From Paraphysomonas bandaiensis (lineage: Eukaryota > Protista > Chrysophyceae), in assembly GCA_965644295.1 (NCBI GenBank), contig CBFFRP010000291.1:165602-229601 (forward strand): a DNA stretch of 64,000 nucleotides, read 5' to 3'. A program made the position numbers and the translations under genes. Numbering within the stretch: position 1 is the first letter of the stretch; each line of letters starts with the position of its first letter. Positions 2,832 to 59,197 of the stretch are shown one piece after another. The notes beneath the pieces were generated by a model. It did no database searches, was not told the DNA's origin, and saw only the letters and a program-made list of their open reading frames with translations.

Positions 2832-2982
2832 TACATATATAGACAGCATCTTATTTTTCGGAAATGTATTGAAGCAAAATTTATCTATATTACTGCAATA
2901 CAACTACGGCTGGAATACAGATAATTGTTGTCTCAATATTAGAGGCATATTGGAATAAAAATATACAAAGGATGCCGATACA
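2832..2982 (+). mobile_element. 151-bp MITE-like element, copy 1 (left TIR decayed)
   Basis: CAGCATCTTATTTTTCGGAAAT...ATATACAAAGGATGCCGATAC aligns with five other copies; TA flanks. Confidence 0.85.
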
Positions 2983-4004
2983 TATACAGTATATACAGAG
3001 AGCGGGACATACAAGCTGCACTATATCCCATATTGGTTCACAGAATACTGTCGTGTATATGATGGTATACCAGTGGAATACTCAAGCAATACAGAGTACA
3101 TTTTTGGGCTTATACTAAAAACCACTCTGTGATAGAAAACTGGCAGATTTCTATGGAATAGCCACTTTTGAGGTTGTAAAAACACTGTTTTGTATATAGA
3201 CAACATACTGAGTATCGTACAGCAGACAGCAGTATCATCTTTAGATCACAGCACAGTTACTACAAACATATATGAGTGACAGAGATTCAGATAGAGGATG
3301 CGAGTCACCCCTAAGAACAAGAGGAAGAACTGTTTGTTCTACGTATGTCTTGACCGTCTATAGTCTGGTTGAGTGATAGCTGTATATGAACTAACTACCA
3401 TACTATATAGATATATATACACATATATGGATATGAGATCATATGATATCATAATATGAATACTGCGGATACTATGAATTAATATTGTTAACATCATCAT
3501 ATTCTCCTTGAGATGAACACTATAGTGATATTATTAGGTGGTGAGTCTTGCTGAGTATATATCATGGTCTTGTAACCATTAATTGTTCTTAATGGCATTT
3601 ACTAGTACTTGATATATATTATGCTATAAAGAATGAAGTGTTTCAAAGATAGATGCCCCATTCGTAGTGCGTGGCCAAAGTGTAGGCTCGCTGGTATACC
3701 ACCTTTAAGTATCAATTTGGTGGAATTTCCTAGCCACACCGAAATTGGTGTAAAACCCTAGTCAATATTTCAATAAATTTTGATTGAATATGGTGATGAG
3801 TATAAGGAAAAGTTCTATTAGCTAAGCAGTAGTGGGGTTGATTGTCATGTGATCTTAATGACTAGTACTAATAATGGAATCTATGAATGTGTTTACTCAT
3901 TGACTAATGGTACTAATACATAGCAATAATAGTGTTGGGCAACAGTATTGTTGGGTCGTAGCATGTTCAGGTAGTACATCGTTGAGAAAATTGGGATTTC
4001 GAAG

Positions 4005-4337
4005 AAAGGTAGAAAAACATAAGTGAATTGTGTTTCTTTCCTGTAACTGATACAGCACATTATGCGTTGCGTGTTTTGTGTGTTTTGGTATATGCATATA
4101 TAGGGGTGGAGGGTGCCCTATATTGACAGCTTAACTAATTACCACGTTTGACCGCCTAGTAAGTGCAGCTGAGTGTTGCGACCGCGCACCTCTACCTATG
4201 TACACATTGCTCAGTGATAATGATGAAGCTAGATAGGTTCAGTATGTAGCTAACAAATAACGTACTATGTGACTTAATCAAGTATTAGTTAGATACCCAC
4301 CCGGCTCTACCTAAGTACGCACTCAGAATGGAGCAGC
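4005..4337 (-). repeat. Dispersed repeat, inverted copy of 22065-22470; contains an internal PIF/Harbinger-like TIR unit (4111-4337)
   Basis: Long colinear reverse-complement match (e.g. GCTGAGTGTTGCGACCGCGCAC; CTCTACCTAAGTACGC.CTCAGAATGG). Confidence 0.8.
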
Positions 4338-4627
4338 TTTGAGTGATTAGTGTGACTAGATAATTCAACCAACTTGACTACTAGGTTGAATAATAGTTCC
4401 CTATACAAACTGATACATATGATACGAGCATTCTTCATCCCCTTTGCTACACTGCGATTATTACTATAAATCTAGAATTGTTTTACACAAATCAGAGCAC
4501 TTGTTACACTTACAACAGTTTCCGCAACTATTGAATTATTATTACAAAAATACTTAATATATATCACAAATTATACGATGCCACATGTCACAAGCCAATA
4601 ACGTATAAGAAAGTAGAAAGCAGAGCA

Positions 4628-7406
4628 CTATTGTCCGCTGGAGCGAGGTCTCCGTGAACTACCCGAATCTTTTTGTGTATCCCTGGAGTCTAAAACCTCG
4701 GCAACATGACGATTCTTTTTCTTTGATATTTCAAGTTGATTTAAACTATCAATAATAGCACTGGTTTAAACATAGAAAATGGAAGATACATACACACAAC
4801 CTGTCTTCGATTGATTCCAGACGAACTTGGTGCACTTGGTCTACAACTTCACATGAATCCACCCTTGCAAATATAAATCACCCCATACTTCTCGAAACTA
4901 ATACACCATACCTCTGTGATAACTCTCTAATAAGAAGAGTGGTGTGTTGCCTATCAGCGTCAAGAGCTGCAGAATCTACCCCTTCTCCTTTCTAAAGTGT
5001 AGAGCACTTAAGATCACTGAAGTCAAATTTCCACAATACCAAACTCACAGATTTGAAATTTGCCCATTTGGCTTCTACGGTATTGAGTTTGTCTTCTAAA
5101 GCTAAATTCGTACGCCTCAAAGAACGAATCGCCTCAACAATATCCTGGACGGAGTGAATACTCCTCGACCCTACAGAAAAACATGTGATACAGAAAACGG
5201 TTTAAATTTACCACTACCCGATATAGAGCAAAATGACTCTAGTTTTCTAATGTGGTTAGCCAGTGCCTTAAACTCCGAAGGCTTTGCTGACGTCTCCTCT
5301 GTTGGGCGCTCTGTACGGATTTTAGATACGAAAATACTAATTGTGGTTAAGTAAACCTTCCACACGTGAGGTGCAGAGTAATTTTTCATGTTGGTGAACT
5401 TTCTTGTTAAGAGAACCAGTTGCATGTTTTAAACTGCTGAACTCCCTCTGTACATCTGTATATACTATTTTACTGACGGTTCATGAATGGGGAAAATAGA
5501 TGTCTTCATAACAGCAACAATCATTATATATACACAGGTACCAAACCTGCGAGAGAATGGCGGATGGAATCCACCTTTTTAATCTCAGACTCTACTCCAT
5601 GAACACGCTTTTTCACTAAAGAAGGATATAAGTCTATGATATGTGCTTCATACAGGGGGTGATTACGTACGATTGTTATACATTTCCACAACGGACTGTT
5701 CTGTAGAAGTTCGACCTCTACCTCCCAAGACAATCTCAGCTTTGATCACTTCGTCCAGTTCTAAATATTACACCAACTTAAATAAACGGCTGAAAAATAT
5801 GCCCTACTACACACCATTGATTCTTCCCTCAAGATCTACAACCACAGCTGACAGAGGGACTGAGAGGGGGGATCCCTGCTGGGCTCTCAGTTCCTGAATC
5901 TGAAGCATATGGCCACAACGTTAGATGTATTAGCAAGCATACGTACACCAGACACAACCTGTTCATTTGTAGCATCTAGACCTAAACTCAACTCTGAAAG
6001 GCTAGATATGTCTGTATTAAAATGATATCACGGCACATTCTTGGAGATACTTGTTCTAAACCTTCCGAATGCTTCTTTATACAGTTGGCCTGAGCCTGCA
6101 TCACAGAACATGTCAAAGTGGAAAAAACTGCAGCACAGTCAAACCTGCACATTATTCGAGAGACGATTCTCTGCTTGCTCTAGTGATACAATACGGCTCT
6201 CAATATCCCCATACAAACGTGTCTCTAATGCCTCCAGTTTCGACGTGGCAGAAACCTGTAGACGGCACCAACTTAAACATATAGGAAAGTTGCCTCTATT
6301 ATTAGTACCAATCGGGAAGTCGTAGTTTTCTTTAAGGCTTCATCTCTCCCAGCAGCAAGAAGACGCTCCATACGAGCGGAGTTAGTGCCTGATCCCGGGC
6401 TACTCTGAACATGACTTCCACCTATCATTCCATCCAAGTATCCCATTGGCATACCATCATCCCTACTTCTGCAGTGCGAGGTATATTAAGGCAGATAAAT
6501 TACACTGCCAATTATGTTACCCTAGGTTAAGTGAAGTTATGGTCTTTTCGTGTTCGGCAAGCACGTTTTCGATTGCTCGTATACTCTACACATACGGTAA
6601 ACTTTAGCACCAGTCGCCTCAAAAGTTCAGTCACTACGTACTCGCTCAACAGAAGCTCTATCCGCCTTATCACCCAGCCTCTCGTGAGCCTCTGTCTGGC
6701 CCATCTAATATAACATCAAAAAACCAGGTTATAGCTGCGAAATACTATTCCTAACCTTCATGTCCAATAGATACTTCATCTCCGGTCTGTCAACTTTCAA
6801 CGAAACAGTTTCTTGTAATTCATCTACAGTACAGCGTAACTTATTACAATGCTCTTTTGTTGCAAAATCTTGAAGCTGACTGTTGATTGACTTCACATTA
6901 ACTTCCAAATGAAGGAGGCGTGTCTTAATCTCATCAACATTTTTTTCTAATAGAGGAGAATGCTGACCATTACAAGACACTGTAGTCTTCTTTTGTCGAT
7001 AATTTGACATAACTAAATCAGTTTTATCAACTTTTCGTTTCATGGACTCATCAACATAACGAATTGTTGCTTTTCTTTCCATATTTGCTCGTATTTCTGC
7101 TAATTGTGCAGTTAATGAACTCATATCATCAATAGTAGCAATACGACTCTGTGCTATGAGTTTAGACTCTATCATATGACTGACATCCGTATTATTAACT
7201 TTCTCTACTGAGATTTTATCAATATCTTTACGTAGAGCAGAGAGTGTATCAGTTAATGAGGCTATTTGATGATGTTGTCGTTCTATATACTCAAATGCCA
7301 TACAGAATGAAGATCGTAGAACATCCTGCATATTTCTCCACTTCCCTTCACCATATGAGAGATCATGTAGATCAATACCAGGGAATAAAGTAGTTGATGT
7401 ATTCAT
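4628..7406 (-). CDS. Multi-exon hypothetical coiled-coil protein
   Basis: Exon 1 is MNTSTTLFPG...EGKWRNMQDVLRSSF with heptad-rich sequence. Downstream segments are bounded by GT/AG, and the last exon ends ...RPRSSGQ* at 4628. A single-gene model is assumed. Confidence 0.6.
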
Positions 7407-10738: not shown

Positions 10739-11344
10739 CTATAAATAAGTCTTCATAGTTCTCTCACGACTCAAACGCAATGGAGAGTCTGTTAACTTTG
10801 TACCGCAATACCGCACCGGGTGTCGTCTATAATCCACTTCTTTATACAACTTATTTTTCACTGCATGAGCCAGCAGAAATCGAAAGTTTGTCCAAAACTC
10901 CTCTGTGTGTCCCTCAGAAAGAGACATAACATGAGCCAGCTCGTGAATCGCTATATACCGAACCGTATTTTCATCCTCTAAATGCTGGCCATATTGTGAT
11001 GTACGAATACAAAGCACAATGAATTCTCCCTTATTAATAGAGTATGAGGTCAGATTGGACCTCCAGTTCTCCTTTATATTACCACTGCGATATCTTGATA
11101 TCAGTCGCAGCACACGATTATCATTCTTAAATCCTCTATTCAAATGAGTACATAGAGTGTCTAGTGTTCTCCTCACACGAGCAAGAAGATCAGCAGCCTC
11201 ATATTTATTATCGATATCAAGAACTGAATAAGATATATTGTCCACTTGAGATCTGATTAGATACAAACTGCGCTCTTCAGTTGCACTATAGATGATATTA
11301 GATGATAGGGAGAACCATACAATTATGGTAAATACTATGTACAT
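10739..11344 (-). CDS. Intronless Zn-metallopeptidase of the Nucleocytoviricota WLM-like family
   Basis: TSYSINKGEFIVLCIR, YIAIHELAHVMSLSEGHTEEFWTNFRFLL (HExxH plus GH), YRRHPVRYCG and an N-terminal hydrophobic anchor. I recognise this motif set from giant-virus metallopeptidases. Confidence 0.85.
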   Translation of the reverse strand: MYIVFTIIVWFSLSSNIIYSATEERSLYLIRSQVDNISYSVLDIDNKYEAADLLARVRRTLDTLCTHLNRGFKNDNRVLRLISRYRSGNIKENWRSNLTSYSINKGEFIVLCIRTSQYGQHLEDENTVRYIAIHELAHVMSLSEGHTEEFWTNFRFLLAHAVKNKLYKEVDYRRHPVRYCGTKLTDSPLRLSRERTMKTYL

Positions 11345-11382: not shown

Positions 11383-11533
11383 CGTATCGGCAGTCAGCAT
11401 CTAATTTTTCGGAAATAAATTGAATTAAATATACTCTTTATTAATGCAATACAACTACGGCTTTAATACAGGTAATTGTTGTCTCAATAATAGAGGCATA
11501 TATGAACAAAAATATACAAATGATGCCGACACG
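11383..11533 (+). mobile_element. 151-bp MITE-like element, copy 2
   Basis: TIRs CGTATCGGCA...TGCCGACACG; internal sequence aligns with the other copies. Confidence 0.9.
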
Positions 11534-11650
11534 ATGTATGTATGTATGTATGTATGTATGTATGTATGTATGTATGTATGTATGTATGTATGCATGTATG
11601 TATGTACAGTAGGTAGTATGTAGGTGTACGTGTGTATGTATGTAGGTAGG
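11534..11650. repeat. (ATGT)n microsatellite with degenerate GTAG/GTAT tail
   Basis: Direct reading; it abuts the right end of MITE copy 2. Confidence 0.95.
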
Positions 11651-11911
11651 TACACATTCTCTGAATTTGATTTTTTGAATTTGGCTCTTTTTCTTCTGGG
11701 TGTATATGTATGGTATGGTATGGTATGGTGTATATGGTGCCTGGTATTCTGCTGTGTATCATCTCTATACGACATGTACAGAGTGTAGTAGTCTCTCTAG
11801 TGTCTATATGCACATAGCTACAGTCTCCATACCATACATATATATAGAACCCTTCCATCTATCGATAACATCACATACATCCCCCTATCACCCCCCTCCC
11901 ATCCTCTTGTG

Positions 11912-14589: not shown

Positions 14590-14833
14590 AAAAAATTAGG
14601 GTAGTTAGGTTATATTGCAACGTCTCTGCCCGTGTGACATTCGTTATAAGATAATTTATCGTAGTGTTGAAACGTTATTCAAAATTTTGGTGTTGAATCA
14701 AACAATTGATCTTACATTCTACTTCCACATGAATATGTCATAAAGAGCCCCCTACCAGTAATTAAACACTGAAACATAACGCGGAATTAAACACACTCTT
14801 TAAATACTAGCTATGCCTACTGATATTGATTAG

Positions 14834-15037
14834 TGAATGTCTTATTATTAGCTATATGTATTTAAGAGTCAGAACTAATTTAGCATTGCAATGTAACTAA
14901 CTAGTGCTTAACTCTGACATTATTATTACGTTTCTAGTTTCTATAGCCCTTACTCCCTACTTTTGGCTTACCCTTTATTCCGAATTCCGATAATTCTTCT
15001 TTTGTTAAGTGTGTACTCTTATAATTGCGGTTATGAC
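14834..15037 (+). mobile_element. LTR-like fragment (~195 bp) followed by PBS-like GGTTATGA; same family as 790-983 and 52387-52594
   Basis: TGAATGTC..ATTATTAG...TAAGAGTCAGAACTAAT...ACTAGT.CTTAACTCTGA is shared with 52387 onward. The ~195-bp distance to GTTATGA is the same as in the 983 copy. Confidence 0.55.
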
Positions 15038-15140
15038 AACGATTTCCATGCTGTATCAGGCAACATAACTGCAATACATGTATATATTCATATATTCCAC
15101 TGAGTCAAGGAGTAGGCGCATAGCTGCCTTTAAGTTTATT

Positions 15141-15290
15141 AAGAAACAGAAATAGTTTGATCTTTAAGATATGTTTAGTAACGAGAGGTTCACAAAACGA
15201 GATTGTGTTGTTTGTCACAATTCGTGCAGACGATATCAATTAACCTATCTAGGCTAACGACAAAGTCTCTGAGATCTAGTTAAGAATGAG
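15141..15290 (+). mobile_element. LTR fragment related to the LTR of the Copia element at 61109
   Basis: GAAATAGTTTG.TCTTT.AAGATATGTTTAGTA...CACAAAACGAG.TTGTGTTGTTT..CACAATT.GTG...ACGATAT...CTATCTAG matches 61231-61406. Confidence 0.75.
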
Positions 15291-15454
15291 TTAACTAACT
15301 TGATAAGAACTCGCTGTGTCCCTGATTGATACACTATTTAATCTTAATCATATAAGTAAGCAGAAAAGCAAATAATAATAAAAAACTATTCATAGACTCA
15401 ACATTTCTCGCAGTAGCAGAATAGTTTCAACTTAAAAAACTGCACGTACGTATA

Positions 15455-18400
15455 TTAACCTATTTTCTCAAGGATGTCCTTCAGAAGACCCTCAATTTTT
15501 TCGTTAGACTCTTCAAGGCGCAGAAGCTTTGCTTCAAGACTACTGTCCTGAACAAAAGCATCGTTTACCTCGTCGTCATACATGCGGTAAAAAATACGGT
15601 CTTCACAAAACTTTTCTTCGTCAGTCATCTCGCCTAGATTTTCAATAATTAGTGAAGTCTGCTCCAACCGCCACTGTGCAAGACCTTTTTCTTTTACACT
15701 TCCTGAAAAATAAGTATGAGATGAATGTACATAGTAACAGCGTAGTACATGAAACCACGACGATCAAATGTACACCTTACCATAGCTGTCACCCATAAGA
15801 GCAATCAAAAGATTTAGCAGTAGAATTGAAACAATCAGCATATACACTGCCGATAAAAACAGTCCATAGCTTTTCATGGAATATGACAGACCATCAAAAG
15901 CTTCTGGATCGAACCCACCCAGCATGAAGGAGAAAGAATTTATCAGTGAGCCATCAATTGAAGCGAAAGCTAAATCATCATCAACAGTAGAAATCAACCA
16001 AAAAGCTTGTGAAAATCCCAGCAATACAACAAAAACGACAAACATGAGAGCCTGCATGTCGTGTGCAATTCGTAGAATCATTGACACTGCAAAAGAAGCG
16101 ACAATTACACATATCACACAAATATGAAGACTTCATACCTAGTGGCCCAGTCGCTTCAAACGCTCGCAAATAATACAGTGTTTGAAACCACCTAGACACC
16201 AATATTATACAAGAAAATCTCACGTACTCTTCATCATTATACTTACATGCATATAGAATTTATACTGAGAAGAACTCGTGAGATTTGATTATCATCCCAA
16301 TAAACAAGCCTTACGATGTTTCCACATAATCCCGATATTATAATAGTCATTTCAATTTGATTCCAAACTTCTGAAAAATAACCCCCAGAGAGGTCTGTGA
16401 GCGTATTAAATTCGTTAAGCTCAGATTTCGCAATATAAACAGTGAGCAATAGTTGTAGTGCGATCAAACACAATGACACAGGCCAGTACGACGTATCTTT
16501 TAAATCACTGAAAGTATATACTGATATGGCACCGATTACCACGTATATGTAGTACACAGCCATCTCATAAATATGAACGGTTCTTCCAAACTTTCGCCAG
16601 GCATAGCTGAGAGCCATTTGTCCGACATCTGAGTCAAATATAGCAACGTTATCCAATTCATCACATACATCCGACATCGCTTGTAGCATAGATGTATGCG
16701 CCAAATGGGGCAAAGGCAAGTATTTATACACAACATCACGATGCTTGCAATGGGAATTGTTAGTATTTTTGTCCACAACTTTAGAGCTGTACATCTTCAG
16801 CCCGATCTCTTTGCTATCTTTCTCATACAAGAAGAAATCTCCATCTTTAATGGATTTTCTACGAGATGTTGGTTGAAGTTTGATACTACAAATGAGCCTA
16901 GAAAACTCCGCCGGGTATTCTCTTGATAACAGCAGCAGGTCTTCTCTCTGCAATTCAGCATTTTCATCATATAGAAGATCATCATCCCCAGAAGGTGTGG
17001 ATGTTAAGAAATGTATCCAACATGATACAATAGCGGAAACGGCGTGAGACTCATTTGCCGCAATAGCCATTGCCAGTAAGCTAGCCTCCACGCCGACTTC
17101 CTTACATGGCTTACTACTATTCGATTTCACGAGACCAATGCGGGTTTGAGGCAAAAATTCTAAGACGAATTCTATTTTGACTCGTTCAATGGCAAGTTTG
17201 AAAAGATATGAGTAATGAACAAAAAACGCTTCTGCACCGACTTCATTAACTAATTGAGACACTCTTGGCCAAGAGCTATCATATTCTCTAAGTGCCTCAG
17301 CCATGACATGACTATTCTTTTGTTCACTGTCGAATTCAAACGCTTGTCTCACAAAATCTTTGTTTGGTAGGGTACCAAGGAAGTCAAACGAAATGCGTAC
17401 AGTAGAGTCGGCTGAAGAACTCGCCACGGCAGGGTCGCCGTCGCATGGACAGAATATAGCGACCGATGTGACTTCGGCGGTATGTCCTTCAATTGTCTTG
17501 ATATGCTTAAATGTCTTGAGGGAATAAACTCTAATCGTCATGTCCTAGACGTGTTCATTAAATAGTTTTAAGCTTGCACATAATATACAGCAATGTACTA
17601 ATACCTCTAGTCAACGATATTCAAAATAATAAATATATAAGTAATAGACATGACGCATCGCTTACCCACGAACTGCTTACAAGTACTGGATACTGTCCCT
17701 CAATATCACGCATAGCAATCGACTGAATTTCATCTGTGTGTCCATACAGAGTGTGTTTAAGTGTATAAGGTTCCTCTAGTGACCAAATACGTATAACACC
17801 ATTGATATCTCCAGCAGCGACAATCGGACCATTGGGAAGGTTGAGAGTAGCCAAAGAGGTAAGGGGTGCATCACTATCATCCAAGTCGGCTAAAATATTT
17901 CCATCGCAAGACCACAATAAAATATTAGTATCAACTCCAGCACTTAGAAGAATGGGCTCGGTAGAAATATTACAATTTAGAGGAAGTTGATGTTTCTTTC
18001 CTGACCGACTGGAGGATGGGACACTTCCCCCAAGTTTTTTAGTGCGAGGTTTCGGTATATGAATATATGCGCACACGGCTGTAACATCAAAAGTGTGCGA
18101 ATCCAATACATGTTGACATTTACCAGTTTTCAAGCACCACATTCTCATGGTATTGTCTTCGCTTCCGGTCAAGAAAAATGGATCAACAGCTCTAATTTTA
18201 ACACCGTCAATAACCTGCTCGGAGACGCCATTGAACGAAAATATGTTTGTAATAGGGCCATCATGTCCTGTTATATCCGGCCCAATTTTATTTCCTTCCC
18301 ATAATTCATACATACGAATAATATTATCTCTTCCAGCACAAATAACAATATCTTGTGAAATGTCAATAACGTCTGTACCGTCTTCAGAAATAGGAGGTTG

Positions 18401-19885
18401 GAAAATATCAGAGGTGTATATAGCCACAGCACGCAATCGCTGGCTCGACACCTTTTTTGACCATACTTCTTCACTTCCACGTAGTTTCTGGGATATTTCA
18501 TACATCCGAAGCGTACCATCCTCAGATACTGTAACTACTGCTACGCACTCAGCATCACAGTACACTGCCATATCGTTGACACGGTTCCTTGATTCTTCTA
18601 CAACCGAATTTTGTGCAGTAGAACTTAAGCCTTCTTTCGTTCGAGATTCGTCCGTAATCTTCAACGCTGGTTTCAACTCAAGAAGACTCATTTCTTCAGC
18701 AAACAACCATGTTCTCAGAGTAGTATCTTTGCTTCCCGAAACAAGGATAATATCACCCTTATTTTCCGGAGATTCTAAACAAGTTACAGCGAGAGCTTCC
18801 TCCGTATGACCTTTAAACACCCTCAGCAGCTCTCCCGTTTCCAATGACCAAACTCTTATATTGCCGTTTGCACACGAGCTTACCACAATGGCATTCTCAT
18901 CGTCTGAGGAGCATAGTGCTATGTCTGTGATAGTCTCCTGATGGCCTTTGAGTGAACGAACTAAGTCGCCCGACTTATAGGACCAAATGCGAATTACAAA
19001 GTCTCGACAAATTGTTAAAATATACGTGGTAGAGTTACTTTTGCTATGATGCACAGCAATGTGCTTGATACGTGAGGGGTTGTTTTGAATTTCTTTTACA
19101 GGTACGGAGTTTCCAGATTGGTCTGGAGGTGCTAATTTCCACACTCGTATCACGCGGTCCTTTCCCCCACTAAACAACAGTGGGCCGTTTTCGGGGCATA
19201 TAAATACATCCAAGCATAAAACCCATGTTATAATAGCAGGATTCATGATAACATACATGTGCTCTCCTTTACTCATAGACCAAACGCGTATGGTTGCGTC
19301 TGTACTAGCGCTCACTATCACAGGGCTCTCACTCGACATTTCCACTATTTTCACTGCAGTTATTCGATTCGTGTGATATCCTGTTAACTCGAACAGATGT
19401 TTCCTAGGGGATGCATCTGATTCTGAGGTGGAGGAGGGAAGAGACCACACCCGTATCGACTCATCCCAACTACCCGTTACAGCCATTGGGCCCGTAGACG
19501 CAGAGTAGTATGAATCTAACGTAACTACTCGTTGTGTATGTCCTTTAAGCGTTGCTATACGTGTCCCATGTTTTAATGACCATATAAGCACTTGTTTATC
19601 TTCTCCACCACTCAATACAAGTGTATCTAATGCCTCTGGTAATGATAGAGTGGTGACTGAAAGTATCGCACTCTGATGACCTTTATACGTTATTCTAGGC
19701 GCTTTAATCGACTCCACTCCTTCAGATACACGAAACGCACTTATACGCTTACGACCACTTCGACTTGAGGTGTCTGCATTGCCATTAGAGTCTAATGAAT
19801 CCTCTCTATGAAATTGTGGTGGGTTGATACTAGGCAGTTGTTTAGGATATAACTTAGTACCACTTTCCGCGTGTACTTTTGCCAT
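15455..19885 (-). CDS. WD40-repeat protein fused to a TRP-like six-TM cation channel domain (multi-exon)
   Basis: More than 10 WD40 repeats (GH...SGxxDxxIRVW). Then WNQIE (S3), YYLRAFEATGPLVSMILRI (S4-S5), pore FSFMLG, S6 ILLLNLLIALMGDSY, TRP-box-like AQWRLEQ and a C-terminal coiled coil. Confidence 0.85.
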
Positions 19886-20356: not shown

Positions 20357-21424
20357 ATGAGTGAGTGGTCAGATTCTGTAGTGGCAATGTTTGCCGTGTC
20401 AGTAGTGATCCTGGTGGCAGAAGTATACATTCTTCTATTCAGAATAGCATATACTCATGTTAAGGTGGCATCAGGGCGACGTATAAGGTTTATGGAGTAT
20501 ATTGGTATGTCGAGCATTGTTACATCGGTGCTATACACCATTATAGCTCTATGTCTGGTTATATTGACTCAGAAACCTGATAAAGTGGCATGTGAAGTAT
20601 CCATCTTTCTATGTATATTTTTGTACGCCTCCAGCAAAATTCAGATATACCTATTCCTGGTAGAAAAGTCGCATCTAGTTCAAAATAATAGAGTGCGAAG
20701 ATCAGATTCGAACTTATACAAGTTGAATGTAATGCTCTTACTTCCATACATTGGGGTACTGGTCCTCATGGTTATTTATCGGATTAATAAAGTAGATAGT
20801 CAAGGTCACTGCGTAATAGGCCTCTATGAAGAAAGTTCAATTCCATTACTCATCTATGATACAGTGTTCAGTGTCTACATGTTGACTCTCTTCTTATATC
20901 CTTTACTTGCTGTACCAAGCCTAAAGTCGAGCTCCACGGGCAAATATGCAAAGAAAAATTTAGTTGGAGCTACTATATCAACTGTCAGTTCATTCGTTAA
21001 CATTTTTACTATATATGCATCCCACGGATCACTTCGGGGCCACGAATGCTTGTTTTACTGCTTGTGTGATGTGTTTGTGAATGTCGTGGTTCTGAACTGG
21101 CTTCTGGGGGGAATGGATGGATGCTGTAGACGCAATGAGGATGTTCAATGCATTAGCCCTACTTCTATGCCGGACGTACCAGCCAGAGAGGAGTCCTCGG
21201 TTTTCCCTGATCGCTTCACCCAACCTCCCTCGAGTAATCCAACTACTACAAGCTCAGGTCGCCAATTTTTTCCGCCCGGGACTCCAGTGGAAGGAGATCG
21301 TGCAGAGTCGATCCTATCTGTGTTCCAGAAGATACTGTTTCGCCGAACACAATCATCTGTCACCCCATTGCCTACGAATGAAGATAAAACTGTAACAAAA
21401 CGGCAAATTGAGTTTGTAGTGTAA
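20357..21424 (+). CDS. Intronless seven-transmembrane (GPCR-like) protein
   Basis: Seven hydrophobic segments; Cys at the top of TM3 (ACEVS) and in extracellular loop 2 (GHCVIG); Ser/Thr/Pro-rich C-terminal tail. Confidence 0.75.
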   Translation: MSEWSDSVVAMFAVSVVILVAEVYILLFRIAYTHVKVASGRRIRFMEYIGMSSIVTSVLYTIIALCLVILTQKPDKVACEVSIFLCIFLYASSKIQIYLFLVEKSHLVQNNRVRRSDSNLYKLNVMLLLPYIGVLVLMVIYRINKVDSQGHCVIGLYEESSIPLLIYDTVFSVYMLTLFLYPLLAVPSLKSSSTGKYAKKNLVGATISTVSSFVNIFTIYASHGSLRGHECLFYCLCDVFVNVVVLNWLLGGMDGCCRRNEDVQCISPTSMPDVPAREESSVFPDRFTQPPSSNPTTTSSGRQFFPPGTPVEGDRAESILSVFQKILFRRTQSSVTPLPTNEDKTVTKRQIEFVV

Positions 21425-21837
21425 CGAAACGTATAGTTTCGATATTGTGTGTATGGTGTTACTTGATGCTTTAAATCGAGTAAAATTTGTCTAAAAATAA
21501 GATAGGAATGTAGGATTGCATATATTACATTGTTTTAAATGTTTGTCCTGGGAAATGCTTACTTTTGTGCAGTTGGATTTCTCTGAAAATAAAAGATAAT
21601 AATACGCTGAACCTGAAGTGACTTTTTAACATTATACAGTCAACCCGGCCACACCAACACTGAATGAGTAGTTTTAATAAAGGAAAGGTTGACATTATTA
21701 AACTGGCCCTGTGAAGTTAAGCTGTACCAAAGTTTCCAAGGCAAGAGGGCTGCTTGTCATTTACAGCATGTTTAAGCATTTCAACCACTTAGTACTTAGT
21801 AGTGGTTAAAATATTACAAAGTCATATTATTACAAAA

Positions 21838-21915
21838 GTCAATTGATTGTCAATTATTGAAATCGGGACATCAAATCATAATTGCAATTGTATTTGATGC
21901 TTCAATTAAGTTGAA
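21838..21915 (+). repeat. Fragment of an AT-rich hAT-like non-autonomous repeat
   Basis: AATTGATTGTCAATTATTGAAATCGGGACATCAAATCATAATTGCAATT is the reverse complement of 24921-24985 and resembles 52238-52280. Confidence 0.7.
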
Positions 21916-22064
21916 ATACTTCCAATGTATTTCGGTTTGATTGTTGATGGGTAGACGTACAGCAATTTTTAAAATATATTTTCTCGACAAGGATGACAAA
22001 GGTGATGACAGTGAGAGTCTAGCTCAGAATGACTGCTGGTAGCAACATTAGACTTATCGTAGCA

Positions 22065-23578: not shown

Positions 23579-23729
23579 CGTATTGGCATCCTTTGTATAT
23601 TTTTGTTCCAAGATGCCTCTAATATTGAGACAAAAATTATCTGTATTCCAGCTGTAGTTTTATTGCAGATATATAGAGTATATTTGCTTCAATTTATTTC
23701 CGAAAAATAAGATGCCGACTGCCGATACG
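23579..23729 (-). mobile_element. 151-bp MITE-like element, copy 3
   Basis: TA|CGTATTGGCA...TGCCGATACG|TA: TIRs with a TA duplication, as in Tc1/mariner/pogo elements. Confidence 0.9.
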
Positions 23730-43000: not shown

Positions 43001-44090
43001 AGAAGAGAGCGAGGAAACGAGCATGATCAGGAACTACTTTCTGCCCCCGAGTTGCCGAGGAGACCAGAGAGGAGTACATCTCTTCCATCTGCCGTGGACT
43101 TGTTGGAGAGTCGACGCAGACCTCAGGCCAAGGACGATAAATTATCGGACGGATCTCCCGTTGGCTCCCCACTTTCTTCCAGGAAACCACAGCCAGAGAC
43201 TGGAGGGTCGAGACCTTATGTGTCGCCCAGCGCCTCCCAGCAGCTTCAGCGTGTGCAGTATCGTATGCGGAGTGCTATCAGTGCAGAGAAAGAAGAGAGA
43301 CGTCGGCAAAACCATGCCGGTAAACTTGGACCTAGACTCTCTTCCGCGTATCCTGCTGTGCGTCACAATGCCTTTGAAATCGATCAAATAGGCCCACCAC
43401 CTGATGATGATGAAATTCTTAGTCTTAGTGAATCGGAAGCTGATGGATCATTCCGTAGTGCTGCCACGGTGGGGTCGATCCCCCCTCATGTATCGCGGTC
43501 TGTGAAACATAGTGCTTTTGCTAAGGATGTGGTGCATGGACTGGGAGTGCAGGGGGATCAGGCAGTGGCAGCGATGAGTGTGATTGATAGGGTCTCTAGC
43601 ATGTCTGATGAACAACTAAGAAGGGTTGATCCAGAGACAAGGGCACAGGTAAACGCTGTTGTGGTAGATATACTTGTGGTTTTTGAATATAAAATAAAAT
43701 GTTTATTTCCGTTATATCCACACGCTTGTGTTGGACATGCTATGTATTAAATTTGCTGTTGGATTCAATCCTTATTGACATTTATGGTAGATTATGTCTA
43801 TACGATCAGAGCTCGGATTGACTGGAAAGAGTAGTGGAGGAAATGCATCTCCACTTCGAGCTTCTCCAATGCCAGATCCTTACCATGATCGGTATTTCGG
43901 AGGAGATGTACACCCTCCCCGGCGGAGTCAGAGCAATGGCGCCATGAACAATCGGTATATATCACCTTTGGTTAATCCTAGAGCCGGAGGAATGTATAGT
44001 GCATCGTCATCCTACCAGCGAACTCCACAGATTGATGACTATGATGATGACACGTACTCACAGATAGATAGTGAATCTGATTGGAATTAG
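40063..44090 (+). CDS. Kinesin motor protein B (N-terminal motor plus coiled-coil stalk, multi-exon)
   Basis: VKVGIRCRP, FHFDYVF, YGQTGTG|KTYTM, SSRSHT, DLAGSER, HVPYRDSKLTRIL. Confidence 0.93.
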
Positions 44091-44399: not shown

Positions 44400-45084
44400 G
44401 AGATCTAAAGATTCTATATACTTGCAATTGAGTGCAGTATTATGTGAGATACAAGGATCGAAAGATATATGTATTAGTACATTACATTGTGTAGTATGAA
44501 ACTGAAGTAGAAGTTGGTGACTATTCAGGATACGATTACTGAGTGTGTGGTTTGTACCACTATAGTAGTAAATGAATGGTGTTGAACACATCGAATACAA
44601 CATGATTCTTTATCATGCAATGTTATAATTTCATCTTATCAATTGAGAATAGCAAACCTTAGAAAGTAATGTCAACTTCTGTTATTCGGCTTTACCATGT
44701 GAATCACTTGTATGTCATCCCACGGCGTCGTATATGGGTGACTTCCTGTTTCCCTACGACCCAGGTATTACTGAAAGGACGTGAAGGGTTTGCTCGACAG
44801 AGAAGAGAGAGTGGGTGCTCCAGAACCATGCGCCTTCTTGACTTCATCAAAGTGATTCACAGTGAAAAAACGCAATTTTAAAGTTTCTAAAGATGACGTT
44901 TGGTGGTTTTATTTCTCCGTTCATTGATAACTCAATAGTAGTTTACTCATGCCTGACCAATTCGGAAACACAACACCTATATCATCACTATTTTAATCAA
45001 ATAAACATTTTGACCAAGGTGACAACGAAATGCTTTACGTTTACATACTATAGACACGAAAGAATATACATACTATTCCAGATA

Positions 45085-47065
45085 CTAGCGGGGATCGAGA
45101 ACCAGTTTGCTTTTTAGATAAGCTCTTATTTTATCTATGTAAACGCTTCCTGGAGTGACTAACTCCATATCATCCAAAGCTTTGAGAGCCTCAGCGATTT
45201 TACCCAATCTCTCGTACAAAAATACACGCTGCGCAAGAGCCTTCGAGTTGAGCCTGCCAATACTGATAGATTTTTCGAGTATGCGGACGGCATCATGGGG
45301 GAGCTATAAAAATATTACAACATATAAGTTTATATGATAGAATATATCATATACAAGTTCCAGAAAGCAATGAACATACACCGTCACAAAACCTACTCAC
45401 TTCATCAGATATTAATGTCGCGAGTCTGTGTAATGCTACTGCCACTCCCTGCTCCTTCTGTATATCCAACTCTAGCTCATTGTACAACTCATTCAAATTA
45501 CGCTCGGCAGCAGCGACTGACTCCTTGGCTATTGTTTCATATATTTCATCCCCCCACGACGCCAGTTTGAGTGTCGTATCTACCAGCATCATATGAATAT
45601 CAGGATGAAGAGGCCTGATGTCCAAAGCCACCCTATATGAGCACCGTATCAGCCGTTAATGGTATATAAATACTATGCTCTTCTTTTCACAGAGATGGAC
45701 TTATAATCAACACTAAAAGTGTCACTTAATTCTCACGTTACGACGTAATTCCTCATCATTGAAGCACAACTATTACTTACCGTAAATGCTTTTCCGCCTG
45801 CTTTAGATGTACTATCGCCTCAGATACATTTCCTTGCTGATAGACGGTCACTGCGCGAGATAGCAACCCTACTGCCATGTTCCTATGCGCATCACAGTCC
45901 ATGCTGTTTCCTCCTAAAATAATGGCCTGGCTGAGAGATATCCTATCAGAGGCCAGCCATACTGCCTGTTCCCCTATACCCACAACAAGGCCGCTTTCAT
46001 CCCTCAGAGTACTATGCGCATAGTCTTGCAGAACGTCAGAAGATGTCTCAGAGATACCATGAATATTCAATGTCATGTGTGACCATCCCGCTGGAACATA
46101 CATGACATCTCCTGTCATCTAGAAATATATAACCAGTCAAACACAGTTCGTCAAAGGAGGCAAAATCTAACGCGTATAACAATGGTAACTTATATTGTGT
46201 AATACCTGTACACATTCCAACGGGCGATATCCACGTTGTCCACGAGATGCCACTTCACAATCCTCACCATCTGTATCTGTCGTGGATAAACACTCCTGTG
46301 CAGAATATCTACGGGGTGAATAGGGAACAGACTTTAGTTTGGAGAAAGCATCCTCCAGTACGTGTGATATCCAGTGCGATGTTCCGGTATAAGGCCGCCA
46401 TGATCGTTGGATATTACGTGGTAGATGGTATCCTGGAGGGTACAAAAACCACTTCTTTTGCCCATTGACTAAACCCAGCCATGCCTCGCCATGCATATGG
46501 AACGGCAACCCTGTAACAAGTCGTTATTCTTTTTTAGTCATATTGAACAAGTGTATATCCAAATGACCTAAATTCAAACCCCCAATAGAAAGAACAGGGC
46601 TCACTGAATCTCTATCAATATCACTTCCAAAGTGTGATAAGATATGAGGTGTTGAGTAATCATTAAGTATCTTGGGATTAGTTTTCAATACATTCACATC
46701 AAATACAAGGATATCTGATATGTTATATCTATGTCCTGTAGATAGACTATCAATGGGATGCATGTCATCTGCTCGTCCATTAGAGAATACTATAGAGGGC
46801 TCATATCCGGTCTGTATGTAACATAACCATATATATATGTATGTATATGTATATATGTATGTACCTGTACAGATATATTACCATACTGTGATAAGAAGTA
46901 GGAAATAGAAGGCCAGTTAGATAGCAGTCCTCTCAAGATCACTGGACGGCTGTTTTTATATGACAGGAGGCTCTGAGAGCTGTCAGGGGTGATGATATCT
47001 ATATCGCATAGAGAGGCATAGATATCTGTGTATATGAGAAACCATATGAAGAGAGTGGTGTGCAT
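45085..47065 (-). CDS. JmjC-domain (JMJD8-like) protein with N-terminal signal peptide and C-terminal TPR-like region (multi-exon)
   Basis: RPVILRG...W, SIGG...GLPFHMHGEAWLGLVNGQKKWFLYPPG, ECVQ|MTGDVMYVPAGWSHMTLN. Confidence 0.85.
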
Positions 47066-47122: not shown

Positions 47123-47273
47123 CATATCGGCAGGCAGCATCTTATTTTTCGGAAATGTATTGAAGCAGAAATTGTCTACACTACTGCAATACAACTACGG
47201 CTGGAATACAGATAATTGTTGACTCAATATTTGAGGCATCTCTGAACAAAAATATACAAAGGATGCCGATACG
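47123..47273 (+). mobile_element. 151-bp MITE-like element, copy 4
   Basis: CATATCGGCAGGCAGCATC...GATGCCGATACG. Confidence 0.9.
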
Positions 47274-47296: not shown

Positions 47297-47650
47297 ATGT
47301 AGGTAGGTAGGTAGGTACGTATGTATGTATGTATGTATGTATGTATGTATGTATGTATGTATGTATGTATGTATGTATGTATGTATGTATGTATGTATGT
47401 AGGTAGGTAGGTAGGTAGGTAGGTAGGTAGGTAGGTAGGTAGGTAGGTACGTATGTATGTATGTATGTATGTATGTATGTATGTATGTATGTATGTATGT
47501 ATGTATGTATGTATGTATGTATGTATGTATGTATGTATGTATGTATGTATGTATGTATGTATGTATGTATGTATGTATGTATGTATGTATGTATGTATGT
47601 ATGTATGTATGTATGTATGTATGTATGTATGTATGTATGTATGTATGTAG
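47297..47650. repeat. Compound (GTAG)n/(GTAT)n microsatellite
   Basis: Direct reading; two GTAG blocks, each followed by GTAC and a GTAT block. Confidence 0.99.
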
Positions 47651-48031: not shown

Positions 48032-51000
48032 ATGATCAGTCAATCATTAAGTATACCATCACCAACATCTGTTAGACGCAGGACAAGTTTATCTCATCGT
48101 CATGGACAATATGCTATCGTTACAGATGGATATGCTGATAGTGCAGTAGCTGATCCAGAGATATTTTCTAAATGTATTCGATTTTTTCCTCGTAGAATGA
48201 AGACTATACCATCCAGTGAGAGTCAGATAGAGCTCCATGGATGCTGTATGATCATTCAAGTGTTGGGACTTGTCGATATCTTTGAACAGTATGGAAGTGA
48301 AATGGATTCAGTGCTGGAGAGACATTCTCGAACTGCTAATGGAGCTTTGAAGACAATCATTCGTAGTGTGCACTCTCATGGAGGTGATATCATTAGTATT
48401 CAGCCACATAAATTAGTGTGTCTCTTTAGCCACCACAACCTACAGGGGCCTATTATTAGATGTGCGATGCAAGCCATACAATGTGGCATCCAGTTATGCG
48501 AAACCGGTATCCGGGATATAACTTTAAAGGTAGCGATATCGTATGGAACACTAAATTTCGCGATAATTGGCGGTTACAATGGCGTATGTAAGTATCTCAC
48601 CAATGGGTCTTGTATAGACTCTGCAGGTCAGTGTCTGAAATACTCTGAGGCTCAGGGTGTTTCGATAACGTCTGATGTACACAATGTTGTGGCACATGAT
48701 GTTTCGGCTGCGAAAATTGGCAATGGGTGTGTGAGAGTGTTGGGCCTGCGAGCCTCAACTTCAGAAGAAAAAACACGTCATTCTTGGGAGGTATGTACAT
48801 TGAACTGTATATATTGGTATTTAATATTGTAATGCTATAACATACGGACACATTATATTTGACAATGGTGTTCTAGGTAATATCAGCTACCACTAGTAGC
48901 GTGGGTTCTCTACTCTCGAGCAATGGCGAATTATTATTGTCGTATGGAGAGATTTGTGACAGAGATATTGTCAGCTGTGTACCTCCTCCTATTGTCTATG
49001 CTTCTGTTACTGATTCACTGGAGAGTGTACAGGGAGTGTGTACAGTAACGTCACTCTATATGAGAGTGGATTCATATATTTCGACTGCTTACCATGAGTT
49101 AACCAGTATGCAGTCCTTTTTATTTTCCATGCAAAAGTGTGTGGCTGAATGTGGGGGGTTCCTTCGACAGTTTCTCATTGACGACGCGGGTTGCGTGTTA
49201 ATTGGCCATTGGGGGACTCCCGCCCCTCCCTATTCGTCACACTGTGCGAAGGCACTTCGCTGTGCAGTGATGATGAAGAACGAGGCCAATAGACAATCAC
49301 ATTCCGTCTCAATTGGTATCACTACCGGAAGAGTGTATTGCGGAGTTGTTGGAACGGAGTTTCGAAGTGAGTACATAGCCCTGGGGAAGTCTGTTAACTT
49401 TGCTGTGCATCTGATGACTAATGCGACTGGACGTGTTTTAATAGACAACTCTACTTTTCAGCGGCTTCCTTTGGATATTGCATCGTGCACTTACGTAGTA
49501 TCATCGTTACTTGTTGATGACTCCTCCGAAGCATCACTGATTCACTGCTACACTTCATCTGTTCCACCTACAATGTATGCCCGAGACATTTGTCCCGATT
49601 CTGAAATAATTGTCGAGGGCTACGTTCGTCGAGTGCTATATTCCGCACTAGACTTTAGCAACGGCACAGCGTTCCTGTTTTCTGATACATCAATTTGTAG
49701 TGATTACTCCTCAGAATCTGATCAAGATAGTTCTGTCGTGTTGACAGCAAATTCACCACTACGAACTATATCTGACTCCACTTCAAATAGTAGTCAATCT
49801 AGAGCGTCATCCAGAGCCAGGGTATTTATTATCACGGGTGTTCCAGGAAGTGGTAAGAATATTTTGTACTTGATCTGTAATTAAAATGTATATAAATTAC
49901 ATTATTTTGAATCTATATTTCTATTGACTATTCCTCTATTATGCTGCGTATTAGGGAAGACGTGTATTGCCAATTTCTTCATCCGTCGCCTGGTGTCCCG
50001 TCAGTCGATGAAACGAGACAGTTGTTACAAGAATACTCGAGCAGGAGTCGTATACGTTTCATTGAGTGATGTAGATGACTCAACAGGAAGCTCCCTCCAG
50101 AAAATATTTCATGGTATATTCATGTGGTTCGATAAACACGATCATGAGAGTCAAAAGGCATTCTTGCTGAGCATGATAGGGGGAGCATTTCCTTCTTATT
50201 CTTCTGCTGGTGTGGTGTTGTCTATTTTCCCGATAATCGAAAAAATTCTGCAAGTTGACTGGGATTGGGGCGTATCATGCAGTGAAGAGGATAAAATGAT
50301 ATTCAGGGCGTATACTGATTACCGTGAAGACAAAAGTGATTTTGACGCTCTTGCAGAGCTGCTGTGTTACATTTTAAGCGAAGGGATACCAGCGTTATGT
50401 GTTGACAATGCTCACTTTATGTGTCTTGATGCTTGGAAAGTGATAACCCGCCTTTGTTTGATGGAACCAGCTGCGACTATTATTCTCACAATTAGAGAGC
50501 GAGAGTATCGAAAGCTCACCGCTTCTGTACGTTTAGTTGACACTTCGAACAACAGCAGATACAGAGAATACGGTGATCAAACGGAGCCATTCTTTCCTGG
50601 CAGTGATACTCCGAAGCCATCCCATGTTGCCACGCTATCGGAGGACGTGGTACCGTTGAGGTATACTGCCCCTTCATGCGATAGTTATTCTTATTTTGCT
50701 TGTAGGCATGCACAGGAGTACAATCATTTGGTTGAGGTACTACCATGCCATACTTTACGAAGACTTCACCTAAAGAAATTGTCATTGAAGACAGTTCGTA
50801 AAATTATGTGTCATCATTTTCATGATGAAATATATGAGTGCCACGTGAAAGCAGCTGCGAAACTAACATATTGTAACCCGTTTTTGCTCGGGAAACTTGT
50901 TCAATACGCGAAACAATCTTTCAGCCACGATTTGTCGAGTGCTGTGTTTCATATGAAAGGCGGTAATGTTGTTTCAAATATTTTAGAAAGGTTGCATCCG

Positions 51001-51807
51001 AGAGAATATGCTATCCTTGAAGCTGCAAGCGTGATCGGGGAGCAGTTTTATATCGATGTGTTGAAAGAAATAGTCCAACCTAGTCTATGTTGTAATTTGT
51101 ACCTTGGTATAAGTGTACTCGAAGAGACTGGTGTTATTATTGCTCTAGCAGATGGCTATTATGGCTTTATCAATGCCATTGTGCACAATCATGTGTATGG
51201 CAAAATTCCGGAAAGGTATGAAAGTGACTAGTTCGTCTATATTTCTGTGACTTTGATGGTATATTTGCAGTGACATAGGCAAGATGCATCTAAAGGCTGC
51301 TTCTGCCATTCAGAAGTGTTGTCCTACTGATTCTCCAGGCTACTCTGTGAGGTATGTTTGTATTATTTCATAAGGCGCTGTCTTAGATTATTTAACAGTT
51401 TAAGTTACCATTACGACAAGTGTAACGATAGCTCGTACAACAAGTTGAGGTACAGGCTGTCGTGCGATGCAGCCCGGAATTACTTGAAGAGACTCGACGT
51501 TGTAGCTGCTATGCCCTTTCTGGAAAGTGCTTATCAGAATGTAGCAACACGATCCGAAGCATCGTCACTATGTACGATATTATTGGAATCTATCAACGTA
51601 ACTCATGCTGAAATGGAAGCATCTAGAGACGGATTAACTCCCAGTCCTAAATTGAGTGGAATTCTTTGGCAGCAAGAGCGAATGTATGAAGCTTTGCAGC
51701 GGCGTCGCAGTGCTATTATTGGAATTGTTGACTATATGAAAGTAATATTTCATGTTTCCCGGTCCCCAGCTAAAGTACATTCTGCTGACCGTGTTGTATG
51801 GAAGTGA
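48032..51807 (+). CDS. Soluble adenylyl cyclase (ADCY10)-like protein: two degenerate class III cyclase domains plus STAND P-loop NTPase (5 exons)
   Basis: HSHGGDII, LKVAISYG, LRQFLIDDAG, SIGITTGRVYCGVVG...R.EY..LG.SVN.A..LM, Walker A GVPGSG|KT and Walker B LCVDNAH. Exons join in frame. Confidence 0.85.
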
Positions 51808-52386
51808 CGAGATTATACGTTCATGTACTGATTGTATAAGTTGACTTCAGCTGTGTCTTCCGCATTTGTTATTCTTGGCGTTTTCAATATTTGGAGCGCT
51901 CTGTTCAATTCGATCATTTAAAGTTTATATCTTACAATACAAAATAGTGCTGCTACATTATGTACTGTGTTTTAATTATGACGCCTAAGTTCATGTTTGA
52001 ACGTTGTGATATTATTGTGTATTGATTCACGAATAGTTTGATATACTGATGTATTTTGATATCTATGAAATGGAAACGTATATTTCTGATCCAGTGTTTT
52101 CAAATGCCAATATCAATATCTTGGTGAGTGCTGGTATAATACTATTCCTATATTCATAATTTGATTTAGCAAAGTACAGTAAATAATACATTTTATTATC
52201 TCATCCTCTGTGCTCAGCCAATACAGATAAAGAGTCTATTAATTGTCAATGATTGAAATTGGGACAGAGTATCATAATTTCAAATCACCAGCCATCAAAC
52301 ACGATGACTGGAAAGAGAAAGTTTCGGTTGCTCAGCGAGGTGGTGGTGGGATCTAAATACAGAGAGCGTAAGGTATCACCAAGTAG

Positions 52387-52594
52387 TGAATGTCAGATTA
52401 TTAGTTGTTAGCAATTGGCGTGTAAGAGTCAGAACGTCAGAACTAATGTATCAAGCAATTTAACAAACTAGTCCTTAACTCTGATATCCTACTATATGGC
52501 ACTCGAAAGACGAAAGCTGCTTGTGCGTCACCGCAAGCACCAAGATGCAACTAAACCTAGTATAATGAATAAAGGAATATTATATTACATAACA
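52387..52594 (+). mobile_element. Solo-LTR-like fragment (family of 790-983 and 14834)
   Basis: TGAATGTCAG start and blocks shared with both other copies; the right end is uncertain. Confidence 0.55.
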
Positions 52595-55597: not shown

Positions 55598-55765
55598 TTA
55601 TGAAGAGTTATCATCTGCTAATTTCTTTGCTTTTATGCGTGCCTTATCTCGCAACACACCCTTGTGCATTTCCTCTTTCTCTGCTGTCTGTAGATAATGT
55701 ACATAAGCTACAATAGCACCCGATAAAATACAAGTGCCCAAGAAAATAGTACCACCCTTGGGCAT
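55598..55765 (-). CDS. PET117: Cytochrome c oxidase assembly factor PET117 (55 aa, below the ORF-track cutoff)
   Basis: MPKGGTIFLGTCILSGAIVAYVHYLQTAEKEEMHKGVLRDKARIKAKK...: one TM segment plus the VHxxQxxExxxMHxGVxRDxxR signature. Confidence 0.85.
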   Translation of the reverse strand: MPKGGTIFLGTCILSGAIVAYVHYLQTAEKEEMHKGVLRDKARIKAKKLADDNSS

Positions 55766-58119: not shown

Positions 58120-58881
58120 CATTACTCATCTGAAACGATGCTGCTGGGCTTCATTTATTGAAGGTGCAACGTGCCATGGATACCACAATATTTATCTACA
58201 TGTTACCTAAAGCTGTTGACTCAAAGGGGTCTGTAGTCTGTGGTGTATGTTACCTTTCGGTTGTAGTAATAATAGAGTTTGAGGCTGCCCATTGGTGTAC
58301 TCTGTTAGGAGTAGTTGTTAACTGCATCAGCCTATGAGCTTAGTACAATTCAACTGTAGCACAAAGAGAATGGTTGGACCTGTGACAAACAAATTGCAAA
58401 AGTATTGTTGGGTAGCTAGCTTCAATAAGTAAAATACTCTTGCAATAAGTGTTCCCTTGTATTGATATAAGGAAGCGATTACATCTAAAAGAAAAACCAT
58501 GACAATGGCTCACAAGTCAAGCTACTAATTCAGTTCGATTCGATTTCGTATTCCTCTACACGTGGAACTTTATTCTCTATCATCATCTCTCTACCTTATA
58601 GTATGGTAAGCCATATGGCGTCTTTAAATACTCTTGTATGGAACGAGTTCTAAGCAATTGTTTAATTGCTATAGCAATGCAATGCACCTTGCAAGATATC
58701 ACTTCTGTAAGGTTTAAGATAATATGGTTACATCACTGATCTGCGTATTGCAAAATTTCAGTTTTTTCTCCTAAAAACACAAAAAACCATACTTTTATTA
58801 ATTACTGAATAAAATATAGGGTTATCACATAATTAGACACATTTTATACTATGCTGCTACGACGTGTGTGTACTGCAGAGT

Positions 58882-59022
58882 TCCTATGTGTATTTTTGTT
58901 CAAAGATGCCTCTAATATTGAGACAACAATTATCTGTATTCCAGCTGTAGTTGTATGTAGGTACTATAGAGTAAATTTGCTTCAATATATTTCCGAGTAA
59001 TAAGATGCTGACTGCCAATATT
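58882..59022 (-). mobile_element. MITE-like element, copy 5 (one TIR lost)
   Basis: Reverse-complement match to the 151-bp consensus, ending GATGCTGACTGCCAATA. Confidence 0.85.
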
Positions 59023-59045
59023 GTGTACACTCTGTAGCATATTTT

Positions 59046-59197
59046 CGTATCGGCAGTCAGAATCATATTTTTTCGGAAATAAATTGAAGCAAAATTCCTC
59101 AATATTACTGATATACAACTGCGGCTGGTATACACATAATTGTTGTCTCAATATTAGAGGCATCTGTGAACAAAAATATACAAACGATGCCAATACG
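59046..59197 (+). mobile_element. MITE-like element, copy 6 (head-to-head with copy 5)
   Basis: CGTATCGGCAGTCAG...GATGCCAATACG. Confidence 0.9.

Follow-up and report, generated by a model that had tools for sequence, protein, structure and literature searches.

A 151-bp inverted-repeat element upstream of genes in Paraphysomonas bandaiensis, probably a new MITE-like family

In barley, where MITEs (miniature inverted-repeat transposable elements) measure 81–274 bp, small non-autonomous transposons insert directly upstream of transcription start sites (TSSs) with no detectable difference in expression (PMC5738225). In Fusarium oxysporum, a MITE called mimp (miniature Impala) is found consistently in the promoters of lineage-specific and effector genes, and its deletion left the expression of SIX1, SIX3 and SIX5 unchanged (PMC3599309). 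Here we analyzed a 64,000-nt stretch of contig CBFFRP010000291.1 from P. bandaiensis (hereafter the window), in which an original prediction had picked out a short element repeated at gene starts. Two alternatives had been proposed for it: a transposon that targets promoters, or a directional promoter cassette for newly acquired genes. Our analysis covered these 64 kb, and the six copies of the element amount to five independent loci. We find that the element is significantly biased toward gene starts and is probably a real, new MITE-like family.

The element resembles the promoter-proximal MITEs of plants (Stowaway/Mariner and Tourist/Harbinger) in being short, non-coding, bounded by terminal inverted repeats (TIRs), uniform in size and located upstream of genes. 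It differs from them in three respects: it has neither the TA nor the TAA duplication of plant MITEs, its core shows a deficit of insertions and deletions (indels), and its host is a stramenopile-like protist. The mimps are the closest functional parallel to the promoter idea of the original prediction; they derive from Tc1/mariner elements and are flanked by a TA duplication. In pithovirus, M1 and M2 are palindromic MITE-like repeats of ∼140 bp, often in tandem pairs, for which no transposase has been found (10.1101/2023.03.08.530996). These share with the element a palindromic, MITE-like build, long TIRs, size and the absence of a visible transposase, but by their description as viral, clustered and with a putative TA duplication they stand apart from it.

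Six copies at gene starts

A profile search with nhmmer recovered all six copies where they had been placed (E<1e-43, 77–87% pairwise identity), each 151 bp long except for copy 6 at 152 bp, and found no seventh copy or fragment elsewhere in the 64-kb window. Homology ends sharply at the element boundaries, and the flanks are unrelated except for a microsatellite and for copies 5 and 6, which are neighbors; a larger element reaching beyond 151 bp is ruled out, since flank homology stops at the ends. There is no open reading frame (ORF) within the 151–152 bp. Along its whole length the element folds back loosely as two degenerate arms: scored against its own reverse complement it reached 114, compared with 50 ± 11 for shuffles, and without the element ends it still scored 84 against 46 ± 11. 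Extra conservation of symmetric positions was rejected (p=0.35). The predicted 10-bp TIRs hold as a consensus (in copy 4, for example, on the + strand, CGTATCGGCA at the left, 47123–47132, with an outer CG that may be a target duplication, and TGCCGATACG at the right, 47264–47273). Both ends are present in four of the six copies, copies 1 and 5 lack one TIR each, and no copy has a perfect pair. The predicted internal A/T tracts also stood in part: A5/T5 tracts reach ∼3 times their intergenic density inside the element, whereas tracts of 6 or more are not enriched and the A+T content is ordinary (67% vs 64% intergenic).

Copy 1 (2832–2982, + strand) has lost its left outer 10-bp TIR and keeps its 131-bp core whole; it lies 11 bp upstream of an F-box/ankyrin ORF. 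Copy 2 (11383–11533, +), with both TIRs and one mismatch, sits in the divergent gap between a WLM gene, whose ATG is at 38 bp, and SSRP1. Copy 3 (23579–23729, −) has both TIRs with one CpG transition and TA at either flank, and a PX-like gene lies 217 bp downstream. Copy 4 (47123–47273, +), again with both TIRs and one CpG transition, occupies the divergent gap between a JmjC-like gene (ATG at 57 bp) and a cyclase gene. Copies 5 and 6 lie head to head, with 23 bp between them, upstream of a CSN6-like gene. Copy 5 (58872–59022, −) lacks its right outer 10-bp TIR, so that homology begins at 58882, and CSN6 lies 260 bp downstream; copy 6 (59046–59197, +), at 85 bp from CSN6, carries an additional T that is the sole internal indel of the family, and its orientation relative to the gene is opposite to that of the other copies.

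We assigned gene starts by eye, so that distances refer to the probable ATG instead of a mapped TSS. The element is always upstream, and the predicted limit of about 260 bp from an ATG was borne out, with matching distance figures. Counting copies 5 and 6 as one locus, and with a statistic picked after the data had been seen, we found all five loci within 220 bp upstream of an ATG, which has p=0.0005–0.0007 against uniform placement over all intergenic DNA and p=0.0014–0.002 when 3′ untranslated region (UTR) space is removed. Weighting by the density of CG or TA sites did not abolish the 5′ proximity. Placement near a start (within 1 kb upstream of an ATG) was seen at five of five element loci and at none of 11 other repeat copies (p=0.0002). 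As predicted, no copy of the element lies in an intron or a convergent gap; the other remnants, which had been assigned to such places, sit mostly on the 3′ side of tandem gaps, with three in convergent gaps and none found in introns. The bias of the element for gene starts is thus significant, beyond chance, and the solid part of the finding, in line with the nonrandom placement claimed at the outset. Fifteen of the 20 gene starts in the window do not have a copy as their nearest neighbor, and therefore promoters here do not need the element.

The narrower associations in the original prediction did not reach significance, even where their counts stand. In five of the six copies the same end faces the nearest ATG (p=0.22); however, copies 2 and 4 are ambiguous, as either element end faces a gene in a divergent gap, and among unambiguous loci the count is three of four (p=0.63). 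The element is found at three of the four genes without a divergent partner, compared with two of eight divergent gaps (p=0.15), and at both intronless genes that the original prediction called virus-like (p=0.053).

A passenger transposon weighed against selection in place

We give about even credence to the view that the element is a new non-autonomous MITE-like family with promoter-biased insertion, whose copies are mostly passengers. Of the two predicted alternatives, the promoter-targeting transposon is the one supported by the TIRs, the sharp ends, the dispersed copies, the star-like tree and the 5′ proximity. The element has the makings of a MITE: it is short and non-coding, it has TIRs, and its copies are dispersed, uniform in size and set in unrelated flanks. 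The tree of the copies is star-like, with internal branches making up 9% of its length. CpG transitions were found at 8 of 32 dinucleotides, six of them in TIRs, compared with 2 of 230 other G/C positions (p=0.0001). Decay at CpG sites, among them those of the TIRs, is ∼16-fold faster than at the remaining G/C sites. This pattern would be the mark of methylated, decaying transposon DNA.

The element consists of two degenerate inverted ends of ∼70 bp, back to back, non-coding and capped by the 10-bp TIRs. In such a scenario, a transposase encoded elsewhere would have moved it in one burst, as the star-like tree suggests, and copies would have gone preferentially into open DNA immediately upstream of genes, with duplication of a CG or with no target duplication at all. 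Integration would have taken place in either orientation, and both orientations do occur, with two copies head to head at a single gene, CSN6. The host may then have methylated the inserted copies, whose CpGs and ends decayed, while most copies would be tolerated by the neighboring promoter. The fixed length may result mainly from the transposition geometry of a minimal two-end element; this is the step of the model that we hold least firmly.

A number of observations weigh against this explanation, beginning with its base of only five independent loci. We searched for target-site duplications (TSDs) of 2–12 bp in the flanks at the common boundary, with offsets of −6 to +6, in the four copies that have both ends, and no TA, TWA or 8–11 bp duplication was common to them. 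Nor was a transposase found in the 64-kb window. The outer 2-bp flanks are TA on both sides in copy 3 only, and AT, AG/CA and TT/CT in the others (copy 2 has AT, and copies 4 and 6 have no 2-bp repeat). The TA flanks reported for two copies were confirmed in copy 3; copy 1 has no defined left boundary. Three of the four intact copies are an exact fit to a palindromic CG duplication, and the remaining one fits if a single CpG transition is allowed, but such a duplication is indistinguishable from part of the TIR; read in this way, the element is 147 bp long and sits in the targets ATCGAT, TACGTA, GCGC and TCGC.

The same flanks count against the familiar superfamilies. Tc1/mariner elements of the Stowaway or mimp type were rejected with TA on both sides in just one of the four two-ended copies, PIF/Harbinger elements (Tourist) with no 3-bp TWA duplication in the flanks, and hAT elements with no 8 bp duplication. 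Mutator-like elements (MULEs) have long TIRs and an insertion bias in or near genes, as here (PMC6446971), but they make 8–11 bp duplications, and Mutator was likewise rejected when none was seen in the four two-ended copies. Transposons without TSDs, such as Spy of the PHIS group (PMC4482050), Crypton (PMC3212892) and IS607-like elements (PMC3627910), would explain a missing duplication or a constant 2-bp core. Cryptons and IS607-like elements, however, lack TIRs, and Cryptons end in 4–6 bp direct repeats; both were set aside because the element has TIRs and no such terminal direct repeat. Spy targets a fixed AAA/TTT site, which is not seen at the element. The collections and literature that we searched held no description of this family. 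Scans with element patterns gave no match in viral contigs (two patterns), JGI metagenomes or GTDB genomes, from which the host organism is absent; an exon of the host CSN6 gene is likewise missing from the metagenome set, and these blanks therefore say nothing about copy number or transcription.

The interior of the element is a further difficulty. It has accumulated 62 substitutions and one 1-bp indel, whereas in four similarly diverged repeat families of the window, used as controls, 119 substitutions go with 29 gaps (∼0.2 per substitution). The deficit has p=0.0002, or 0.008 conservatively; it weakens to p=0.004–0.08 if the two lost ends are counted as indels, and it is measured against a small set of control repeats whose gap counts vary with the alignment. 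The motifs CGGAAAT and GAGGCAT, which the original prediction did not mention, start 83 bp apart in all six copies (47150–47239 in copy 4, + strand). Moreover, 28 of the 62 internal substitutions fall within a 24-bp block at element positions 43–66 (47165–47188 in copy 4, + strand) whose length is unchanged; this clustering has p=0.0003–0.0005, and the substitutions are transversion-rich. Adjacent mismatches were equally common in the control repeats (33% vs 35%). Pairs of compensating indels can be drawn in the variable block with cheap gap penalties; given the equally frequent adjacent mismatches of the controls, we do not claim them. Invariant columns number 82, compared with 75 ± 2.4 expected. 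The 131-bp core is whole in all six copies, with both losses stopping at the TIR boundary, unlike the other repeat families of the window, which are fragmentary. Because of the indel deficit, the fixed 83-bp anchors, the clustered substitutions and the losses that end at the TIR boundary, the internal spacing is probably under constraint, be it in place or in the lineage that transposes. An intact core, losses confined to TIRs and a star-like tree are also what selection in place would give.

We therefore weighed the possibility that the element is MITE-derived and exapted, with the 131-bp core kept by host selection as a cis-regulatory module and the TIRs dispensable. Two protein-binding blocks, sites for a factor or remodeler that shape a nucleosome-free region, would be held 83 bp apart. 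The indel deficit, the invariant anchors, one free block beside conserved blocks, the invariant columns, the truncations confined to the outer TIR and the lack of partial copies all speak for this account, and MITEs can spread factor-binding motifs (PMC5950925). On the other side, the CpG decay suggests silencing, and the copies are mixed in orientation and range 20-fold in how far they lie from the ATG. The indel deficit itself is sensitive to the end losses and to the few, alignment-dependent controls. When element words were compared with element-free promoters, only generic AT-rich 7-mers were in common. We regard exaptation as the chief alternative, although an unlikely one. A bolder version, which we think a long shot, is a 147-bp transposon-derived cassette between terminal CGs, its spacing held by host selection, that would set promoter chromatin or start sites at many genes, including giant-virus-derived ones, and whose mobilizer would have an undescribed CG target specificity.

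Chromatin, RNA and promoter tests

Could the element be something other than a transposon: a replication origin, a satellite monomer, a small structured RNA or a short interspersed nuclear element (SINE), spread via gene conversion or retroposition? The lack of a canonical TSD and of a visible transposase, the fixed length and the A/T-rich dyad would fit. However, we found no Rfam or tRNA match to the element, and a structured RNA or SINE was rejected by covariation terms of +1.61 and +0.76, unfavorable on both strands. Neither is there a poly(A) tail, a 5′ truncation series or a tandem array, and the ends are defined by inverted repeats. We consider such an origin doubtful. Random insertion followed by selection that purged every copy away from gene starts is quite improbable: in a compact genome with short introns many insertions would be harmful, but the 11 other repeat copies that survive in 3′ or convergent gaps show that insertions are tolerated there.

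Next, we considered whether the element positions nucleosomes, as had been claimed. There is no 10-bp AA/TT/TA periodicity in the element compared with shuffles (p=0.79); together with the ordinary A+T content and the enrichment of 5-bp tracts only, this leaves the claim without support. A periodic CG in the window was also looked for and rejected. The length of 147–151 bp falls in the usual range of MITEs.

Promoter activity was approached through transcripts and strand composition. Exact look-ups of 18 window ORFs gave a single match, the element-free gene at 20357–21424, which is present in MMETSP, EukProt and JGI. Over 1464 nt, its transcript matches the window with 100% identity, and so this strain has a public transcriptome. 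RNA-seq reads of the strain are available as JGI 3300017004, and the read set SRR31053356 contains part of this genome. No transcript of a gene that bears the element was recovered. The gene is intronless and expressed, encodes a multi-pass membrane protein with no Pfam match, and has a 5′ leader of at least 203 nt with no element upstream. Its known transcript 5′ end is at 20154, and the G-to-C skew switches at 20140, 14 bp away, which makes the switch a weak start-site proxy with one calibration. Such switches occur upstream of several genes (7590, 11811, 20140, 30510 and 47693) and may mark start sites. By this weak proxy, the switch is at no fixed element position across element-bearing loci; at WLM/SSRP1, JmjC/cyclase and PX it lies beyond the element, and at CSN6 it falls at copy 6's opposite end. 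A collection with the transcriptome of this strain contains the element-free gene, but no protein of either virus-like gene was found there, which may reflect length limits or assembly gaps. The missing proteins thus lend, weakly, no support to activation by the element. A sigma-70 scan, which has no bearing on a eukaryote, did no better than chance, and TCGGCA of the Fusarium SIX promoters, which also occurs in the TIR, was treated as coincidence.

A directional, nucleosome-length mobile promoter that activates unpaired and newly acquired viral genes is the most improbable of the readings we weighed: the shared end in five of six copies, the unpaired and virus-like genes that carry the element, copy 1 at 11 bp from an ATG, the 147 bp within the terminal CGs and the giant-virus-like relatives of the WLM gene would suit it, but those associations are not significant, the CpGs decay, the 10-bp periodicity is absent, the skew switch (a weak proxy) lies off the element or at its opposite end, and no protein from either virus-like gene was found, such that this second predicted alternative has no positive support.

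Neighboring genes, other repeats and implications

The window belongs to a compact, intron-rich eukaryotic genome with 40% G+C and holds ∼20 genes, among them SSRP1, Vps8, two kinesins, PET117 and a JAB/MPN gene, with a Copia element at its right end. Its gene content, together with the distribution of database matches, points to a stramenopile, probably a chrysophyte. The ORF beside copy 1 (1564–2820, − strand) is intronless and F-box-like with ankyrin repeats, the latter by Pfam and the F-box by eye only; no homologue was found for the F-box N-terminus. It contains ten 87-bp repeats and has a CpG ratio of 0.27, compared with 0.82–0.86 for other genes; methylation or the composition of the repeat unit could be the reason. 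The WLM metallopeptidase ORF beside copy 2 (10739–11344, −) is also intronless. Its best matches are environmental proteins with 43–51% identity, one of them on a gene-dense, giant-virus-like contig, and no locus for the protein was found in viral contigs in a search for close relatives only. A viral affinity is plausible from these matches, which would make the gene a candidate for transfer from a virus.

The other neighbors are spliced and were searched exon by exon. The PX-like gene downstream of copy 3 (23947–24488, +) was labeled by eye, its first exon having no Pfam match. The JmjC/cupin-like gene beside copy 4 (45070–47065, −) owes its label to motifs and a homologue named cupin-like; an exon search led to a 1.2-kb unspliced contig that ends 350 bp short of copy 4. 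Downstream of copies 5 and 6, the CSN6-like (JAB/MPN) gene spans 59283–60848 (+). Elsewhere, the two kinesin genes lie head to head with 612 bp between them (36667–44089), and a small PET117 gene (55598–55765, −) is divergent from an ankyrin gene at 56407. A WD40 protein at 15386–19885 is apparently fused to a channel-like membrane region, and the cyclase-domain protein at 48032–51807 has a P-loop-like motif.

Several other repeats share the window. The three long (ATGT/CATA)n arrays, at 11534–11652, 30585–31239 and 47297–47649, each occupy a gap between divergent genes, one gene having CATA on its sense strand. Two of them, (ATGT)n on the + strand, adjoin the element: the first abuts the right end of copy 2, and the last begins 23 bp off the right end of copy 4. 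A second repeat of ∼330–400 bp (4005–4337 and 22066–22470; 87% identity at aligned bases, many gaps) occurs each time just 3′ of a gene and 1.0–1.1 kb from the right end of an element copy (copies 1 and 3), both pairs sharing one relative orientation; the stretches that separate repeat and element show no homology. A short family at 21834–21926, 24876–24964 and 52230–52283 includes two inverted copies that bracket a 3-kb stretch with copy 3 and the PX-like gene, and a fragmentary family (809–877, 14831–14920 and 52384–52551) is always on the 3′ side of genes. The Copia retrotransposon at 61209–64000, with gag, zinc knuckle and integrase by Pfam and a frame change near its start, is cut by the window end, and its 5′ non-coding part recurs as a decayed copy at 15121–15305. 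A separate small fold-back at 1058–1190, rich in ATATTG repeats, resembles another type of MITE.

If the element is a passenger MITE, it contributes a family from protists that have received little study and serves to mark where genes begin in their genome; plants and fungi are well known to have promoter-biased MITEs, and this case would therefore be modest. Two features would remain unusual: the ends match none of the common target duplications, with CG as a possibility, and the core tolerates substitutions and is nearly free of indels. If the constraint instead proved, across the genome, to act in place, the family would offer a clean, many-copy test of whether, in a compact genome, a transposon can turn into a standard promoter part and assist in absorbing virus-derived genes.

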